A DNA stretch of 64,000 bases from contig NW_003314277.1 in the NCBI RefSeq assembly GCF_000143415.4, forward strand, positions 1,454,493 through 1,518,492. The letters are read 5' to 3'. The DNA is from Selaginella moellendorffii. Lineage: Eukaryota > Plantae > Lycopodiophyta. This document shows positions 19,370-35,776 of this stretch, one piece after another (position 1 is the first letter of the stretch; every line of letters begins with the position of its first letter). The position numbers and the translations under genes were made by a program. The notes under the pieces are model-generated. The model was not told the origin of the DNA. It searched no databases and was given only the letters and a program-made list of their open reading frames with translations.

Positions 19370-21004
19370 ATGAGTATGCAATACTCGCGGAACGAGGCCG
19401 GTGGCGTGGGCGTGATTCCTCCGCGGCACCACCACGCGCAGCGATCGATTGGCGGTGGCGGTGGCGATGGGGGGAGTGGCGCCGCCGACCGGGTTTGTTC
19501 TCCAGTCTCTCCCCTAGATCAATCCATGGGCGGCGGCGGCCGCGGCGGGGGATCGTGGTCGAGCCAGAGCTCCGGCTCCTCCTCCTCCCCGCCCACCGCG
19601 GTGAGCTCCGCCGCCTCCAAGCCCTTGAAGCAGGAGGAGCTCGATTTCTACGCGAATCCCTCGCAGCGCCAGCAGGATTATAACAGTAGCTCGAGCAGCA
19701 TCCAGCACGCGCTGCGCGAGATCGAGAGCCGGCTCCTGCTGGACGACGACGACGAGCTCGACTACAAATCCTCGCCGGATTCCTCCACCACCTCCACATT
19801 CATGCTCGATCTCCTGGGCGGAGGCGGAGGGGGAGCCGTGCTTGCGCCCAGCATCTCGCGGGATCTGGTGGAGCGGATGGGCGACCCGCGGCAGCTCCTC
19901 CTCCTGTGCGCGGAATCCATCGCCAACGGCGACTTCGCGCTGGCGGAGGTGGTGATCTCGCGCCTCAACCAGGTGGTGTGCATCTACGGCCAGCCCATGG
20001 AGCGGCTGGCGGCGTACATGGTGGAGGGGCTGGTGGCGCGAATCCAATCGTCGGGCACGGGGCTGTGCCGCGCGCTGCGGTGCAAGGAGCCGGTGGGCAA
20101 CGAGATCCTCTCGGCAATGCAGGTGATGTACGAGGTGTGCCCGTACATCAAGTTCGGCTACATGGCGGCCAACGGCGCCATAGCCGAGGCGCTCAAGGAC
20201 GAGCCACGCGTCCACATTATCGACTTTGAGATCGCGCAGGGGACGCAGTACATCGCGCTCATCCAGGCGCTGGCGCGGCGGCCGGGCGGGCCGCCGACCG
20301 TACGGATCACCGGGGTGGGAGACCCGGCGGCGGGCGTGGCGGCGCCGGGCGGGGTGGCGGCGGTGGGGCGGAGGCTGGCGGCGCTGGCCGCCGACCACGG
20401 CGTGCCCTTCGAGTTCCACGCCGTGCCCGTCAGCGGCGCCGGGGTGACGGACGCGGCGGCGCTGCAGCGGCGGCCCGGCGAGGCGCTGGCCGTCAACTTT
20501 GCCATGCAGCTGCACCACATGCCCGACGAGAGCGTCAGCGTTTCGAACCCCCGGGACCGGCTGCTGCGCATGGCCAAGTCGCTGGGCCCCAAGATCGTGA
20601 CGCTTGTGGAGCAGGAGGCCAACACCAACACCGCGCCGTTCCTGGCGCGGTTCAAGGAGTCGCTCAGCTACTACGGCGCCGTGTTTGAGTCGCTGGACGT
20701 GACGCTGCCGCGGCAGAGCAAGGAGCGGATCAGCGTGGAGCAGCACTGCCTGGCGCGGGATCTGGTGAACCTCATCGCCTGCGAGGGGGCCGAGAGGATC
20801 GAGCGGCACGAGGTGATGGGGAAGTGGAGGGCCAGGATGAGCATGGCCGGGTTCAAGCAGTACCCGCTCAGCCGCTATGTCAACCAGACCATCAGCTGCT
20901 TGCTCAAGACGTATTGCGACAAGTATAAGCTGAGCGAGGAGGATGGTGTCATCTATTTGGGCTGGCTGGATCGATCGCTCGTGTCGGCATCGGCGTGGAA
21001 TTGA
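19370..21004 (+). CDS. GRAS transcription factor, PAT1/SCL1/5/13/21-type, intronless
   Basis: PMERLAAYMVEGL, YEVCPY.KFGYMAANGAI, VHIIDF, LAVNF, VTLVEQEANTNT, ERHE...KWRARM and SAW terminus. Confidence 0.96.
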   Translation: MSMQYSRNEAGGVGVIPPRHHHAQRSIGGGGGDGGSGAADRVCSPVSPLDQSMGGGGRGGGSWSSQSSGSSSSPPTAVSSAASKPLKQEELDFYANPSQRQQDYNSSSSSIQHALREIESRLLLDDDDELDYKSSPDSSTTSTFMLDLLGGGGGGAVLAPSISRDLVERMGDPRQLLLLCAESIANGDFALAEVVISRLNQVVCIYGQPMERLAAYMVEGLVARIQSSGTGLCRALRCKEPVGNEILSAMQVMYEVCPYIKFGYMAANGAIAEALKDEPRVHIIDFEIAQGTQYIALIQALARRPGGPPTVRITGVGDPAAGVAAPGGVAAVGRRLAALAADHGVPFEFHAVPVSGAGVTDAAALQRRPGEALAVNFAMQLHHMPDESVSVSNPRDRLLRMAKSLGPKIVTLVEQEANTNTAPFLARFKESLSYYGAVFESLDVTLPRQSKERISVEQHCLARDLVNLIACEGAERIERHEVMGKWRARMSMAGFKQYPLSRYVNQTISCLLKTYCDKYKLSEEDGVIYLGWLDRSLVSASAWN

Positions 21005-22989: not shown

Positions 22990-23400
22990 AAAATTGGTGG
23001 AACATTTCCAAAACAGTCTTCCCATCAATCTCTACAACTTGAGCTCCCTGTCAACTAGCTTACACTCGCAACTCACGAGCCCTTAGATGATTAGAGGAAA
23101 GTCTATAGATAAGATTTAATCTAGGGAATCACATACTAATCATGTGCTTGGGAACACCATTAGTCTAGTCTGTACTGGTTGGCAATGCAAGTTGACATTC
23201 TTCCAACAAGAAGGTGGTGAGCTCTTTATTGCACTAAGAATCTTTTCTGGCCATTTTAACTTTTCCCAATGCTCTACTATACTTAGGATCACTATTTTTT
23301 CACAGTTGGTCGCGAGCAACTCAAAGGTTCCCTCCTTAGAATACTATAAAGTTAGCCTGAGCTATAATCATCTCCAGATACCCTAGATTCTAAAAACCCA
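22990..23400 (+). pseudogene. Degenerate extracellular LRR (RLK/RLP-like) fragment
   Basis: LPINLYNLSSLS, LGNTISLV, FSGHFNFSQCS, QLKGS and SLSYNHL fragments, with stops and frameshifts. Confidence 0.5.
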
Positions 23401-23479
23401 CTTGGAGTACTACTATAAAACTTTGGAACACTGTGTTTGAAAGCTAAAAGAAATTCTGGAGTGGGATCCTTAGAACAAT

Positions 23480-24040
23480 CTAGTTTGGCTGGAAGTTGAT
23501 CTGAGGGAAGATGTCAATGAGTTGAACTGCTTCTCCTTTGTTCTTCTTGCAAACAAGGATTTGGACTGGGACATTGTTCTGCAGGACAATCTTCACTCCA
23601 AGGCACACATTAGCTCCCGAATGACCAGATGTCCACTTGTATGTTTCTTGCAAAAGCTCCTCCAATGTTTCATGCCATACCGCTACTGCCCAGACAAAAG
23701 TTGGCTTCCATTCGTGATTACCAAGTCTGGATGCCACCTGGCCGTCGCTTTGCTTTATTCTCCCATTGCATAGCACTGCACTTGTGGACCCTGCACAAGA
23801 AAATAAGAAGCGATATTGAAATCTTACAAAAGTCGTCATGGCTAGCTACCTCCAAGGGAGACAGGTCGTTGACCACTCTCACAGTCGACACCAAACCCGT
23901 CTAGAGCCCTCAGAATGTTGTTATTGAACCAGCATGCACCCTGCTCGTGATGGCCACACGGGTCTCTCAGGCTCGGAGCTGGGGCAAGGGGGGAAGCGAC
24001 CTCACAAACTTCTCTTGCTGTTCAATGCCTTGCACACAAG
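23480..24040 (-). pseudogene. Decayed Uma2/Crinkler-type PD-(D/E)xK nuclease-fold gene with one intron (23849-23791), paralog of 24166-24894
   Basis: Spliced DPCGHHEQGACWFNNNILRALDGFGVDCESGQRPVSLG|GSTSAVLCNGRIKQSDGQ…WKPTFVWAVAVWHETLEELLQETYKW…VCLGVKI. The upstream VQGIEQQEKFVR segment is in another frame and no start codon is present. Confidence 0.65.
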
Positions 24041-24165
24041 AATGTCAGTGGATGTGCAACAACAATAAAAAAATGGTGTCAACTGATAGCCTAGGCTAAA
24101 TCTTCCTCTGGCCAAAGGCTGTATTGAAATGGCTATGACCTAAAAAAAGTGCAGCGTTTTCGGCT

Positions 24166-24894
24166 ATGGACGTCAAGAGCTATGCCGAATTTCTGGAAAG
24201 GTTTTGTCGTGAAGAAGTCGTTCGCCTTACCAGCAATCAAGGGCCAGTGTCGGTGGAATCGGGACTTCGACAGGAAGAGTTTATGCGGATTTACAACGAA
24301 ACCGACGCACACAAGAGAAGTATGCTTTTCATGAAAGATCAGGGTGAGTTGCTTCTACAGTACGATTGCTCTGTCTTCCATGAGCAAGTCCGGATTTTCT
24401 GGTTCATTCAGCTCTGTAAAGCACTCACGAAAGTGGGCCTTCAGTTCGAGGGCAGAGAGAGGCTTGTCCAAATTGGCCCGGGCAGCTTGGTTGAGCTCAA
24501 CGATCGGTTACAGCAAGTTGACTTTATTGTGCTCGAACGATCCTCACAGGAACCAACGTTCCAGAACGCCCGCGTCGCAATCGTTGGTCAAGTTGTCTAC
24601 GCAAATGAGTGCATCGATAAAGTGGTGAACGACCTTGATGCTGTCACGTCTGCTGCAAATGGCGGTGCCAAGCTTGGGATAGTCATCTTTGTTCGGCCCA
24701 CGGTGGAGGAGCCGCTCGTAGTGTGGATCAAGGAGAGAGGATTAGAAACTCAGCGAGTTGAAGTCTCCGACGGTGCAGTGCGGCTCGACTGGTTCAAACT
24801 CTTCGACGAGCCCGAGATTAGATCCCAGATTATTCCTCCTGGAATCTCCGAAATAAGCATGGCAGCGGCCGCGGACTTCATCCGTGGCATCTGA
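24166..24894 (+). CDS. Intronless 242-aa Uma2/DUF820-like restriction-endonuclease-fold protein with altered catalytic motif
   Basis: EEF…GELLLQYDCSVFHEQ, G..…RLQQVDFIV, AIVGQVVY, GAKLGIVIFV, LVVW and terminal LF…I.M. The order and spacing match Uma2-like REases, and it aligns with the adjacent minus-strand paralog. Confidence 0.65.
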   Translation: MDVKSYAEFLERFCREEVVRLTSNQGPVSVESGLRQEEFMRIYNETDAHKRSMLFMKDQGELLLQYDCSVFHEQVRIFWFIQLCKALTKVGLQFEGRERLVQIGPGSLVELNDRLQQVDFIVLERSSQEPTFQNARVAIVGQVVYANECIDKVVNDLDAVTSAANGGAKLGIVIFVRPTVEEPLVVWIKERGLETQRVEVSDGAVRLDWFKLFDEPEIRSQIIPPGISEISMAAAADFIRGI

Positions 24895-24929
24895 TCGATC
24901 CATCGTTGCCAGAGGATTTTAGATTTTAC

Positions 24930-26600
24930 ATTCGCATAGCTTTCCATAGTTAATGTTCTTAATCTTGCCTGCCAGTCGAATGATCTCCAGAGTTTTGAAA
25001 AGCTCGTCATAGCCACGTTGTATGAGCTGCCACCACGTTTCTGGTTATGGCTAGCAGGGTGCTCACACAACTTTGAACGAGAAAAGGAAGGAAAACAAAA
25101 GCTTGCCTGGACTTGTTTCTTCTCTGCAGCACATTGTTCGCAGTATCGCTGACACCTCTTTTCTCGTCTTTGCAAGCCCACAATTCCAGCGTGCTGGCTA
25201 TCACGTCGCCCATGGCGGACCGAAGTGCACCAGCCTGCCTGGAGAAATGAGCTTGCGTTGGCCTGGAGGTGTGAATCCCAATCTCGGTTTGTCCACGGAA
25301 AAGCGCTGGAGCTTTCAAACTCGTCGGGAGCTTAGCATACTCGGACGCAATATCTCCAGCAAGCCTTTCATCTTCGACTTCGCTACTTTGCATGGTTTTT
25401 CATGCGCATGGCGGTTTACTCTGTTACCTGGAGGAAAGCTCGGACATGATACTCGATGCACCGAAAGTTCCCAAGGTTGAGTGGCGCAATCTCCATATCA
25501 TCCTCCAATGCGATACAGTTGCTCGACTCGAGAATCGACTCAGAGAGATGATATGAAAGATGCTGTAGACCCCCTGATGGTTATAGTCAGCCTGTCAACT
25601 TGTTTGTTCTGGATAGTGAGCTTGTAGAGGAACTTCATGTAGTACGGCATGGCATACTCTTCTTGGGCTCCAAATCCTTCTCAGTGCACGGCAAAAAGCT
25701 GTTTCCCGCAGGCAAGCGTGGAGGGCGAGGTCGGGAGCAGTAGAGCGTATTGCCGAGAAGGTTAAGTTCCCTGAATGTTCAGCTCGAGTGGATCCCCCTC
25801 TCTTACGTGGCACTCCACGTCACGCCTGTTTAACGACTAAATATAAATTAGTAATGTTATTAACTGGTGTGTTAACGACTATAATTTCGATATAATTTAT
25901 AAGTGTGGCTTGGTTTAGGTTTTTCCTCATTGTGTTTTATTCTTATATTTTTCTTTCTTATTTTTATCATTCTCTTTAGTATTATGTCTAGATTGGAATA
26001 TATAAATCATGCTATTCTTACTTTTTCTGATTTTATTGTAATATACTAGAACAGTGATGAAGTGGCATGCCTATGTCGGCAATGAGATGGCATGCAAATC
26101 CAAATAAGCAAATGAAGCCCACCCAAGCCGTTAAAACATAAGACCCATCGCCATCGCCACCGGCAAGCCGCCACTGGGCTCTTCGATCATCGACACCAAC
26201 CTCCAAGAGCCGGCGTTCTTTTGGAGCATGAGGCAAACTTCCCACAAATAATCTTTCCGCTTACTGTCGCAACAAGAACGTTATCGCCTGTGTTGGAAGA
26301 CCTGAATTGAAGTGCTTGTAGAGAGCTTCAAAGGAAGGCTCCCGCAAAGCTGCAACTGGAAGAGGTTGCAGAACTTTCATCGAAGGTGAGAATCAAATCG
26401 GAAGCCGCTTTGAGCCACGGATCACGGATAAAACAGAAATCGATCATCACGTACCGCAAGTTGAGCATGGTTTCGCCGCTCAACAAAGCCACGCGGCTAA
26501 GCTCTCCGAACTCCTTCCCACACCCAGTTTGAGGCAATGTTAAGTCGTTCGATTCTCTTACCAAATGAGAAAAGCCTTCAAGCCGCTCCTTCATCTTGTT
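24930..26600 (-). pseudogene. Unidentified multi-exon coding-like relic, split by an AT-rich insert (~25830-26050)
   Basis: GC-richer, protein-like segments bounded by GT/GC-AG sites (MKERLEGFSHLV…, YAMPYYMKFLYKL…, ALEDDMEIAPLNLG…, EDERLAGDIASEY…, YDELFKTLEIIRL…) that need frameshifts to join. Confidence 0.35.
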
Positions 26601-26789
26601 GTTGTCATTACGTGGCGGAGCCCCGCCTTTAAAGTGCCACGCGGGCGAGATGCAACGCACTGACCAGTGTCAACGCTTTATAACGAGAAAGGGAGCTTCA
26701 AGAAAGCTCGCAGCAGCCTTGGATCGACAAAACACTCTTGACCCCCGTGATTGCTTGCGGCACGTCGTCCTGATTCTTCTGCAACTGGA

Positions 26790-28897
26790 AATTATTAATA
26801 TATAATTTATAAACATGTTTCTATTTCTAGAATATTCAGAAATATTCTTCAATTGTACTCGACTAATATATTCATGGTATATAAGCCTTGATTTTGCCAT
26901 GGATTAATACTCAAGCTTTAAATCCTTTTTGGTCTCTAAAATAAACAATTAATAAACCAAGTAACTGTGAACTAACATTAACCATTAATTACAAAACTAT
27001 GTGAAGAGCATAAAGAGGTTATTAATGGAGTAAGAAATTTCTACTTAAAAATCTTATTAACTTTTTATATTTTATGTTCTTCTCTTTAGGAACATCTATG
27101 GCACTGTGGCTAAATCTAGTGTGAAGTATATTTCACAAAGTCACTACAAAATGTTCAAATTCAACCTGATGAATATAGAGACTAATAGCATGGCATTAGT
27201 AATAATTATGAAGAAAATCAGTTCTTTTGATTGTTCTCAATATCTAGGAAAATGAGAAACAAGCAAAAAATACCTTTTAAAACCCAATAAAATCAAAGAG
27301 AAAAAAACAAAAAAATGATATAAAGAAATTAGTTATTTACTCTCTATTTTTCATGCTTTATGAATATTATTTTTTTGGGAGTCATAATTATATAGTTGCT
27401 TCTTGATTGGAATTTGAGGAGGATGCCATTATATTTCTTGAGTTTCTTTTTTTTTCATGAACATGTGGAACAAGTGAAAATTTATCACACTCAACAATGA
27501 AATTACCACATTAACAAATTAACTCTACTAACCATGATTGTGGAGTGAATAATTTCATAAAAGAACATTTAAACTATGTATTAATTTATTATCATGACAT
27601 AATTTAAAGTGGTTATTCACTTTCAATTCTATCATTCTTTTAACAAAATTATTAAAAATAAAAATATTAAAATTTAGAACAATAAATTAGGGAAAACTTT
27701 AATAAACCTTAAAATTAAAATTAAACTTGAACCATATAAGTTATAATTTTTTTTTCATTAGTTTTGCACATTCTTTCTTATTGCCAGAACACTCACAAAA
27801 AACGTTAAAATCAACAATAAATATGAACCCATAGACTAAGTGGAAAGATGTTAAATCTACCTTGATTAATCTATCAAATTCTTTTATTTAAACAAGATGC
27901 ACATATTATACAATAATTCTATATTATTTATATAAACCTTATAATACATTATCTCATAAGGTTGTTTCTTTTTGTTTTCTAAGTTATAAAGAAGAATTTT
28001 ATATTTTTCTGAATGCTTCCCAAATGGTATTGATAGGTGTTTGGTGAAGCAAATATATCAAATGAACTTCCCATTAAACAATTCTCTCTCTTTGCTTATG
28101 TGGTAGTGACTTAATATCAACCTTCTCCCATCTAGACCCTCCTAACCACACCTGTCTTCACCTGTTTTTTTGTTTTTTTCACAAATTTTATATGTAACCT
28201 AAAATATTTCATAGTTCTTGCAAATTACAATCAACTTTAACTTGTCTGGGTTTTCATATATCCCTATCAGGCATGAGATATTAATTCAAAAAAATCATTT
28301 AGGATCCATCAAGCAATTTAAACTGAAATTTATCTAAATCATATATATAATAAAAAGATAAGAATAAGTTTTTAGATTGTGAAAGGGTATGTAAATGAAA
28401 GGTATATTTAACTTTATTGGAAACATGACCCATTCAACTAGAATGAGGGTTCAAAGCACTTTAAAAGAATCTAATTACACTCATTTTTCCAATTAAAAAT
28501 TGCTCTATTGGGATGGGAGGGATCAAAGAATAATTTAGAGAATTACAAACATATATAACACACCATTGTATTATTCTATCCACACAGTTTTTATGAAAAA
28601 AATGTGTGCAGCACTTTTATCCACTCAAACATTACATAAACCATAAATACGTGTAATTTACATGGTGAATTTATAAGGGTTACTAAAGTTACAAGGTGGC
28701 AGCTAAAGATTTCATCCCAAGCATAGATGGCACTTTGAAAGGATTGAGGAAAAAAGCTTGACCACTGTGAGACTCAAGATCTGCTGCACTGCAATTGTGA
28801 AAAACTCACAATGGCATTAGTATTTATATTGCCATTTGATTATCCCTGCATTTGATTTGTGTGAATAACTATTGAGAAATTTAAATAAAATTTATTA
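26790..28897. other. AT-rich non-coding block, possibly decayed transposon or filler DNA
   Basis: Sharp drop in GC and no ORF of 60 aa or more between 26900 and 28897. No termini recognised. Confidence 0.5.
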
Positions 28898-33667: not shown

Positions 33668-35776
33668 ATGGAGCAGCCGGCCATGGCGTACAGCACCGGC
33701 GGATGGAACGATCGATGGTATGCGCCAAGCAGCAGCCCGGAGAGCCCCCCGCCAGGTATCCAGCGGCATCACAGCCACCGTCATCACTACGGCAAGGATC
33801 GCCACAGCACGGACTCGGACTCGGATCATCACCACCACAGACACGACCGCGGCGGCTCCGTGGAGAACCAGGGCTCGGCGGAGGGTAAGAAGAGGAGGAG
33901 CCGATGGGAGCCCCAGCCGGAATCCACCGGGGAAGAGGGCGGCGGCCAAAATCCCCAGCAAAGCCAGCAGCAGCAGCTGCAACTCATCGATCCGCAGCGG
34001 CCGCCCGGCGGCGATGGCAGCGGCGCCGCCGCCCCCAAGAAGAGGAAGTCGCGATGGGCCGCGGAGGAGCCCAAGACGCTACTGGCCAATGTGAATTTGT
34101 CGAACTTCCCGACGATCGAGTGGGATCCCGAGATGCAAGCGCTCAATATCAAGGTGTTGGAGCTCAACCGGAGGCTCCAAATGGGACAGCTCTACGACGA
34201 CCGGCCCGACATGCCGAGGTCTCCATCTCCGGAGCCCATCTACGACAACATGGGCATTAGGATCAACACAAGGGAATATCGAGCTCGCGAGAAGCTGACG
34301 AAGGAGCGTCACGAGCTCATCTCCGAGATGATAAAGAAGAACCCACACTTCAAGCCGCCACCCGACTACAAACCTCCGAAGCTCCAAAAGAAGCTCTACA
34401 TCCCGTCGAAGGAGTACCCGGGGTACAACTTCATAGGACTCATCATCGGGCCTCGCGGGAACACGCAGAAGAGGATGGAGAAGGAGACTGGAGCGAAGAT
34501 CGTGATCCGCGGGAAAGGGTCTGTGAAAGAAGGAAGAACGCACCAGAAGAGGGACGTGAAGCCGGATCCGTCCGAGAACGAGGACTTGCACGTCCTGGTG
34601 GAGGCGGACACCGAGGAGGCGCTGGAGGCGGCGGCTGGGATGGTGGAGAAGCTCCTCCAGCCGGTAGAGGAGGGGCGGAACGAGCACAAGCGAGCACAGT
34701 TGCGAGAGCTGGCGGCGCTGAACGGGACGATCCGGGACGACGAGAGCTGCCGCCAGTGTGGACAGCTCGGGCACCGGCAGTACTGCTGTCCGGAGAAGAG
34801 CACGACTTTCAAGGCTGGGGTGGTGTGCGCGAAGTGTGGCGACGGCGGCCACCCGACGAGCGATTGCACGCAGCAGGGACCGGCGGTGAACAAGATGGAC
34901 GGGGAGTACCAGAAGTTCCTGGTGGAGGTGAACGCCGACGGTAGCGGCGGTGGCGGCGACGCCAGCGTCGGCCGCCACACCGGGCCGACTTTGCTTCTCG
35001 GGGGACCGAGTGGTGCTCCGGGGGGCCTGACGGCGAAGCCCAAGGACGATGATACGAACCTCTACGTGGGCTACTTGCCGGCGACGTACGATGACGAGTC
35101 CTTGAAGCGGCTCTTCTCGTCGTTTGGACAGATCGAGGAGGTGAAAGTGATCAAGGACCGAACCACCGGCGCGAGCAAAGGCTACGGGTTCGTCAAGTTC
35201 ACGGACCCGGCGGCGGCGAGCCAGGCGGTGTTTAGCATGAACGGGTGGAAGATCGAGGACAAGACGCTGGCGGTGAGGATCGCTGGCCGGCCCCCGGCTC
35301 CAGGCGCCCCGGCGGCGTATGGAATGGATGGAAGTGGCGGCGGTGGAGCCTATACGGCGTTTCCTCGGCCACCCGGGTCCATGGCGGCGCCACCACCGTG
35401 GGGTCCCGGCCCGCCGCCACCTTTCAATCCTTACGCCGCTCAGTACCCGCTGGCCCCACCGGGGACGGTCCCTCCGCCACCCTTCAACGCGTTCCCGCCG
35501 CCGGGGGTGTACGCGGTGGATCCAGCGCCGCCGCCGCCGGGTTTCTCCCCGCCGCCAGCGTCGCAAGAGTCGCAGGGAGCGGCGTCGCAGGGGTCGGAGT
35601 TCTCGGGCTCTGCGTACCATGGCTATCCTCCGCAGTACTCTGGTGGCTACTACACTGGACCGCCGCCTCCGGCTGTTCCTCCGTGGGCCACGAATGCCGC
35701 CGCGGCCGAGAACCCGCCGGCTAACCAGGTGGAGTCGGAGTACGAGCGGTTTATGTCCGAGATGAAGATGAAGTAA
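33668..35776 (+). CDS. SF1: Splicing factor 1 / branchpoint-bridging protein
   Basis: KKRRSRW ULMs, [15 protein letters not shown]2 ([32 protein letters not shown]), two CCHC knuckles, RRM (KGYGFVKF) and EYERFMSEM terminus. Confidence 0.97.

Follow-up and report, generated by a model that had tools for sequence, protein, structure and literature searches.

Uma2 (DUF820 or TT1808; PF05685, COG4636) is a large bacterial family, with 1wdj, 3ot2 and 6okh as solved members, for which, to our knowledge, activity has apparently never been shown. Restriction enzymes in which the metal-binding Glu of strand β3 is replaced by Gln, as in EcoRI E111Q, bind DNA without cutting it. A survey of the PD-(D/E)xK superfamily published in 2012 lists Uma2 as bacterial (PMC3424549), a survey of fungal domains from 2014 has Uma2 in one fungus (PMC4102429), and in bacteria the genes are mostly grouped in paralogue cassettes (Makarova et al., 2009; PMC2701414). 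Our literature search found no paper linking Uma2 with Selaginella. Here, we compare with these systems a locus of the lycophyte Selaginella moellendorffii, at positions 23480-24894 of a stretch of 64,000 nt (GCF_000143415.4, NW_003314277.1:1,454,493-1,518,492, forward strand), the whole of which we call the window. At this locus, an intact gene on the plus strand and a decayed relative on the minus strand lie head to head. The explanation that best accounts for it overall, and which we consider probable, is that a small Uma2-like family, known by sequence only from S. moellendorffii, is represented here by a working and a dead member; the identity and anatomy of the locus are assigned with high confidence. 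The original prediction, drawn from the letters of the DNA, had proposed a pair of Uma2/Crinkler-type nuclease-fold genes in a plant accessory island, and had set them against the gene sets of flowering plants, to which the lycophyte does not belong. What it described is confirmed; its interpretation is supported in part.

Results

The intact gene and the predicted fold of its product

The intact gene was found, as predicted, to be an intronless open reading frame (ORF) at 24166-24894 of the plus strand, which runs from ATG to stop and encodes 242 amino acids. Its product shares 98% identity with SELMODRAFT_403467, which is annotated as a hypothetical protein, and the window shares about 96% nucleotide identity with GL377566.1:2653074-2673802. 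By these identities, the window represents the GL377566.1 locus in its second haplotype and the ORF is the other-haplotype allele of the orphan SELMODRAFT_403467. Pfam detected no domain of any kind in the protein, and the NCBIfam and PDB sequence searches returned no match. Between the two haplotypes, the gene shows a ratio of non-synonymous to synonymous substitution rates (dN/dS) of 0.24, and the substitution rate of the ORF is 0.015. In one small sequencing run, whose status as RNA was guessed, three perfect contigs were found, all of them within 24142-24975, with the minus-strand copy and the flanks uncovered. These contigs weakly suggest that the intact gene alone is transcribed, with short untranslated regions (UTRs), the 5' UTR falling in the 24022-24165 spacer between the two genes.

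Structural comparison places the product close to Uma2. An AlphaFold2 (AF2) model of the protein was built on an alignment of five A-type sequences (the A-type branch is described below) and had a predicted local distance difference test score (pLDDT) of 53; the model built from the single sequence was unusable (pLDDT 38). With the alignment-based model, Foldseek returned 1wdj_A (TT1808) as the top match (E 3.3e-5, probability 1.00), followed by 3ot2 and 6okh. VIA-align gave Z scores of 12.6 to 1wdj (163 residues, 3.7 Å), 10.8 to 3ot2 and 10.3 to 6okh; two other restriction-fold proteins scored 8.8 (3ijm) and 8.6 (9y1l), and all remaining structures 7.0 or less. A search of the ESM Atlas with the same model concurs with this outcome, so that the solved Uma2 members are the closest structures found, for a model of pLDDT 53. 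The ESM Atlas also holds a model of exactly the 242-residue protein, with a predicted template-modelling (TM) score of 0.74, which matches bacterial clusters consisting entirely of Uma2 proteins with TM scores of 0.61-0.62, and eukaryotic, mainly fungal, clusters with TM scores of 0.75-0.76 over residues 5-242; one of the latter is 23% Uma2. By sequence features, the nearest neighbours also include an oomycete cluster. The nearest Atlas clusters are made up of proteins of 260-300 residues, most of them without any common Pfam family. Residues 27-213 of the 242 align to the Uma2 domain, which leaves over a short N-terminal helix. As the original prediction had it, then, a Uma2-like PD-(D/E)xK restriction-endonuclease fold is supported for the modelled protein, with Foldseek, VIA-align, the Atlas and a profile alignment by hhalign in agreement.

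A possible sequence relationship to Uma2 and the putative active site

The profile alignment was made against 11 genes annotated as Uma2, taken from cyanobacterial and other plasmids, two of which, from Nostoc, were verified by Pfam PF05685 (120.6 and 92.6 bits; the gathering score of the family is 27 bits, and the Nostoc protein with 120.6 bits served as the control). The Selaginella family profile (A3) aligned with these 11 proteins over 104 columns with a probability of 73% (E 3e-5), and a profile of A-type sequences alone aligned in the same register with a probability of 37% (E 3.6e-4). In hhalign, the Selaginella segment G-E-L-L-L-Q/D-x-S-x-x-H-E falls on the segment G-x-L-V-E-M/H of Uma2. 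D119, which stands in the motif Q-Q-V-D and is invariant in the A-type, falls on the invariant Asp of the PD motif; Q142 is matched with the Glu that is invariant in the E-V-x-S strand, and Y145 with the invariant Ser. All A-type genes therefore keep the PD Asp and none keeps the Glu. The conserved Lys of Uma2 (D-Y-x-x-K, about 10 residues past the Ser) has no conserved counterpart after Y145 in the A-type, K152 being present in two of the five genes; this last residue was mapped by spacing only, the hhalign alignment ending before the Lys region. Residues H72, E73, E110, D119, E124, Q142, Y145, N147 and E148 are invariant in the five A-type genes, and N147 and E148 are invariant in the alignment of both branches of the family. 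The original prediction had the intact copy carry Gln, and the relic Ala, where a catalytic Glu would be expected. Since Q142 maps on the invariant Glu of Uma2, the substitution by Gln is confirmed, and the alignments between the branches and the family profile concur, also for the Ala of the relic.

Two further searches can be recorded here. A tblastn search of plasmids with a B-type protein found nothing, and matches to IspH and ribosomal proteins in the PDB, at E values of 0.09-0.4, were dismissed as chance.

A two-branch family in Selaginella

We find that the family has two branches, A, which carries a Gln that is invariant in five genes, and B, which carries PD...E, and that the two are adjacent at two independent loci. 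The A-type comprises the window gene 403467, the allelic pair 431661/413824, 413829 and 421957, with 38-50% identity. The B-type comprises 413823, 416522, 431346 and one further copy, and is found by sequence in Selaginella only. It was first met on GL377586 and on the allelic scaffold GL377729, beside A-type genes and on the opposite strand, as a gene of an unannotated family. Members of the family are uninterrupted, simple ORFs of about 210-245 codons. B-type proteins have the motifs G-D-P-S-x-V-H, E-P-D, I-E-V-A-Y-x-N-E and I-G-V-K-I and no Pfam match, and they keep the PD, the Glu and a Lys/Arg (at +9).

Within the genome, A- and B-type proteins are only 18-20% identical and the synonymous divergence (dS) between them is saturated. 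The two branches were nonetheless aligned by hhalign (probability 91%, E 1e-6), by reciprocal matches of hidden Markov models (HMMs; E about 6e-5) and by BLASTP (E 0.021 over 133 residues), and BLASTP, hhalign and MAFFT all place Q142 of A opposite the Glu of B. The dN/dS is 0.12-0.39 among A-type paralogues and 0.25-0.26 for deep B-type pairs, so that both branches appear to encode selected proteins. By these measures, the A- and B-types are homologous and each is under purifying selection. Run exhaustively against 1.84 billion representative proteins, phmmer returned only two further clusters, both from S. moellendorffii, and word-seeded profile searches with the A-type and the B-type found relatives only from the same species; the proposal that the family is lineage-specific is borne out at this level. 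The neighbouring A and B genes are convergent at GL377586 and divergent in the window.

The A- and B-type genes of GL377586.1 lie in a tandem segmental duplication (L007:8271-13457 and L002:8286-12748), the repeated block consisting of a gene of the MR_MLE enolase superfamily, an A-type gene and a B-type gene, and the whole MR_MLE/A/B block is also found on the allelic scaffold GL377729.1 (L004). Three A-type paralogues seem to have faulty gene models in the reference (L002:10001-11623, L004:10001-11361 and L003:10001-10660): the models of P0004 and P0002 have spliced C-terminal extensions and that of P0003 has 11 residues spliced out, and each of the three has an uninterrupted ORF for a full, family-like protein that ends like P0005.

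The minus-strand relic

The minus-strand copy (23480-24021) consists of two exons. Exon 1 (23850-24021), an open frame without an ATG that is closed upstream by a stop codon at 24022-24024, covers the D-x-x-x-H-H-E-Q helix region. Exon 2 (23480-23790, with the stop codon at 23480-23482) covers a PD-like S-D, the β3 strand, where Ala stands instead of Glu/Gln, and the strand with G-V-K-I. The 59-nt intron of the original prediction was located at 23791-23849, with GT at 23849-23848 and, following a pyrimidine tract, AG at 23792-23791, and it joins the open frames 23850-24021 and 23483-23790 in phase. The intron length is not divisible by 3; once the intron is removed, the frame is whole again and the relic is in register with the paralogues, and the two splice dinucleotides are unchanged in the other haplotype. 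To judge from these features, it is a genuine short spliceosomal intron. The peptide motifs that had been quoted for the two copies are all present. The genes are divergent, as described, and the spacer between them (24022-24165), which contains the stop codon that closes the relic frame, measures 144 nt and not about 130 nt.

That the two copies align had also been claimed, and this was recovered in one of two ways. In direct comparisons with the neighbouring intact gene, in which the exons of the relic were searched separately and not as a joined protein, BLASTP failed to align exon 1 and aligned exon 2 with an E of 1.5, and tblastn found nothing; the claim, which had been staked on a significant pairwise alignment, fails when taken literally. 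Through family profiles, in contrast, the copies align, and they do so in the register first proposed. An HMM of seven A- and B-type members of the Selaginella family, searched against 1,837 six-frame pieces of the window, ranks the exons second and third (exon 2, E 0.0021, 14.4 bits; exon 1, E 0.13, 8.4 bits), and the two are collinear on the model (positions 59-95 for exon 1 and 129-188 for exon 2). With an A-only HMM the exons again come second and third of the 1,837, with E values of 0.2-0.5. Moreover, BLASTP against a B-type protein from another scaffold gave an E of 9e-4 for exon 2 and of 0.016 for exon 1. By BLASTP the relic is nearer to B than to A; it has features in common with both, and we make no firm assignment to a branch.

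The relic lacks about 55 N-terminal residues, with the G-P-x-x-V motif, that are common to all intact members, and it ends about 55 residues before their C-terminus. Besides the Glu/Gln, it has lost a Tyr and an Asn that are invariant in the family. In the other haplotype, exon 1 lacks 14 nt at 23928-23941, a change that breaks the frame, and has 12 nt inserted at 24010; the stop codon is also gone. The haplotypes differ in the relic by 4 synonymous and 11 non-synonymous substitutions, and its substitution rate is 0.042 as compared with 0.015 for the intact ORF (2.8-fold). The annotation of GCA_000143415.2 has no gene model on the minus strand beside the 242-codon ORF. The ranks with the family profiles, the BLASTP matches to the B-type and the in-phase intron agree with the earlier view of the minus copy as a decayed relative; by the pattern of its changes it is a pseudogene that drifts neutrally, dead or dying.

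Genomic context

In the reference annotation, the neighbours of the locus are APG12, a GRAS factor, an unknown protein of 522 residues and a splicing factor of the SF1/KH/RRM type, and the locus is syntenic in both haplotypes. With ordinary plant genes such as APG12, GRAS and SF1/KH/RRM on either side, the idea of an accessory island was dropped. The GC content at third codon positions (GC3) is 0.58 in the intact gene (24166-24894) as compared with 0.71-0.89 in large neighbouring ORFs (19370-21004 and 33668-35776), a difference that might stem from weak expression or from a foreign source.

Just downstream of the intact gene, this haplotype has about 2.2 kb of AT-rich DNA (25826-28004; GC 0.33), where the reference haplotype has only about 38 nt at the matching site (L001 11642-11681); the extra DNA is probably a transposon or another insertion polymorphism. 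About 20% of the words sampled from 23300-25100 were present in a sequencing run of 2024 from a differently labelled organism, which suggests that another accession or species carries a near-identical stretch.

Discussion

The Selaginella family resembles Uma2 in its whole-domain structural match (Z scores of 10-12.6), in the order of its motifs, that is, an N-terminal G-x-L strand, a His-bearing helix, PD and a hydrophobic strand with E/Q-V-x-S/Y, and in size (170-220 residues in Uma2, 210-245 in Selaginella). It also resembles the bacterial genes in having neighbouring paralogues (PMC2701414). It differs in that it has no Pfam match at any threshold, resides in a eukaryote, a lycophyte, and has an extra N-terminal helix. 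Moreover, neither Selaginella branch has the Glu that is near-invariant in the 'Y-E-L' strand of Uma2, the A-type has Gln for the invariant Glu and no conserved Lys, and one of the copies carries a spliceosomal intron. We therefore class the family as Uma2-like, in a divergent eukaryotic form, and not as a member of Pfam Uma2.

Nearest to both A and B are the fungal, Mucoromycota and oomycete clusters of 'restriction endonuclease domain-containing' proteins in the ESM Atlas (260-300 residues, one of them 23% Uma2), with which the Selaginella proteins share language-model features (0.93-0.95), TM scores of 0.75-0.76 over residues 5-242 and an N-terminal extension that bacterial Uma2 proteins lack. 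Unlike the structural and feature-based likeness, sequence similarity to these clusters was not found by phmmer or hmmsearch. The link to Crinklers (CRN) that had been put forward was not upheld. What the window protein shares with the restriction-endonuclease domains of the oomycete and fungal Crinklers is the general fold of the PD-(D/E)xK superfamily; it is a resident plant gene in which Pfam, the only means applied here, finds neither a Crinkler header nor a signal peptide domain nor any other domain, and no test linked it to Crinklers. A Crinkler/ubiquitin-like header and a secretion signal would be expected at the N-terminus of a Crinkler, where the structural alignment to the Uma2 domain leaves only a short helix, and most of the proteins of the nearest Atlas clusters have no common Pfam family.

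Several observations weigh against our interpretation of the locus and are brought together here. The confidence of the AF2 model is low (pLDDT 53), and the assignment to Uma2 rests on the fold and on one profile-profile alignment of moderate probability. Even at E≤10, Pfam Uma2 (PF05685) matched neither the window protein nor the other four A-type proteins, the four B-type proteins or the relic; phmmer and hmmsearch with the family matched no sequence in the PDB, and a B-only profile barely aligns with the 11 Uma2 proteins (hhalign probability 2%). With respect to expression, three RNA-seq runs of 2026 that carry the species label, and have no positive control for the organism, gave 0 reads on 23100-25300, and the sole contigs on the intact gene come from the run of guessed RNA status. 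The adjacency of A and B may be no more than the outcome of a duplication, tandem or inverted: at three other loci an A or B gene stands alone, and the A3 profile detected no relics of a partner around the single-gene loci L003, L005 and L006. Finally, catalytic residues are known to change place among PD-(D/E)xK enzymes, and the invariant E110, E124 and E148 may replace the Glu, in which case A may still cut.

Because mutants with Gln for the β3 Glu bind without cutting, and because the Lys is also missing, the A-type would most likely be a cleavage-deficient, nucleic-acid-binding pseudo-nuclease retained for a non-catalytic role; for the absence of catalysis as such we would claim about an even chance. 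The comparison with EcoRI E111Q and with natural PD-(D/E)xK pseudo-nucleases concerns the substitution at the metal-binding acid of β3 and is a functional analogy only. The restriction-enzyme variants are engineered single mutants, whereas the Gln of Selaginella is natural, is invariant in five genes and is accompanied by the loss of the Lys. The original prediction had suggested a domesticated pseudo-nuclease, a decoy or an antidote; that this Gln is invariant and under purifying selection fits a functional, non-canonical protein and is silent on its role. The B-type, for its part, would be a likely active nuclease. Since bacterial Uma2 genes mostly form paralogue cassettes, A/B or A/A dimers, whose A subunit would modulate or target the nuclease, seem plausible, and at the window locus A would now act without a partner in cis. 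We nevertheless regard a partnership of A and B as doubtful. As for a toxin-antidote pair, A and B are adjacent at two independent loci and single at three, and their orientation differs between loci; complex predictions for an A-type with a B-type protein (ipSAE 0.07 and 0.01) weigh neither for nor against binding. Possibly, A and B form a eukaryotic nuclease/pseudo-nuclease pair, in which the Gln-bearing A dimerises with the Glu-bearing B and restrains or targets it, as a toxin-antidote-like or defence module that descended from bacterial Uma2 cassettes and reached lycophytes by horizontal transfer via fungi or oomycetes, but this scenario is improbable.

A different reading of the A-type is that it is a fully active nuclease with a rearranged site, in which Q142 together with E110, E124 or E148 stands in for the Glu and Lys. 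The family is under purifying selection, D119 of the PD motif is retained, H72, E73, E110, E124 and E148 are invariant in the five A genes, N147 and E148 are so across A and B, and migration of catalytic residues is established for the superfamily (reviewed in PMC3424549). However, Q142 aligns exactly on the Glu that is invariant in the 11 Uma2 proteins and present in the B-type, the Lys of Uma2 has no conserved counterpart, and Glu to Gln at the β3 position normally abolishes cleavage, so that we hold an active A-type to be unlikely. Slightly less credit goes to the idea that the family was acquired horizontally in recent times, be it from bacteria or from fungi or oomycetes, and behaves as a selfish or toxin-like element. 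The restriction of the family to S. moellendorffii among 1.84 billion representatives, the fungal, Mucoromycota and oomycete nature of the clusters nearest in structure and embedding, the listing of Uma2 as bacterial in 2012 (PMC3424549) and the low GC3 of the gene all speak for such an event. Set against them are the lack of any relative outside Selaginella, at the level of sequence, on which a tree could be built, and of mobile-element genes called beside the copies. Moreover, because A and B have diverged to 18-20% identity with saturated dS, the context is one of ordinary plant genes, both haplotypes carry the locus and one copy has acquired a spliceosomal intron, this is an old resident family and not contamination.

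The minus-strand copy invites two further explanations. If its likeness to the family arose by chance in non-coding DNA, the locus would hold a single family gene; the direct comparisons with the neighbour were indeed not significant, the individual A-only profile matches are weak (E 0.2-0.5), the reference has no gene model there and no read or contig falls on the copy. Such a coincidence is nonetheless very improbable, given that the two pieces rank second and third of 1,837 with both profiles, are adjacent, collinear and on one strand, match the A+B profile and a B-type protein from another scaffold with E values as low as 0.0021 and 9e-4 (0.016 for the other exon), and are joined by a canonical GT-AG intron of 59 nt that restores frame and register. 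Alternatively, the copy might be a functional spliced short gene, a truncated member that encodes, for example, an inhibitor fragment. Exon 2 is, after all, an intact ORF of 119 codons with its own ATG, and the canonical splice sites are kept in both haplotypes. Yet in the other haplotype 14 nt of exon 1 are deleted and the stop codon is gone, the 4:11 ratio of synonymous to non-synonymous changes and the 2.8-fold substitution rate indicate neutrality, the family-invariant Tyr, Asn and Glu/Gln are gone, and there is neither annotation nor transcript evidence; a working short gene is, if anything, a shade less credible than a chance resemblance.

With one working and one dead family member as the favoured account of the locus, Selaginella 'orphan' genes that are unseen by Pfam now have a predicted fold assignment. 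The practical importance of the family is modest until an activity or a phenotype is shown. Its active-looking and inactive-looking paralogues, together with a locus at which a partner appears to have died, would nevertheless amount to a natural experiment, and a resident land-plant family with the predicted Uma2 fold would offer a tractable eukaryotic system in which to ask what Uma2 proteins do.

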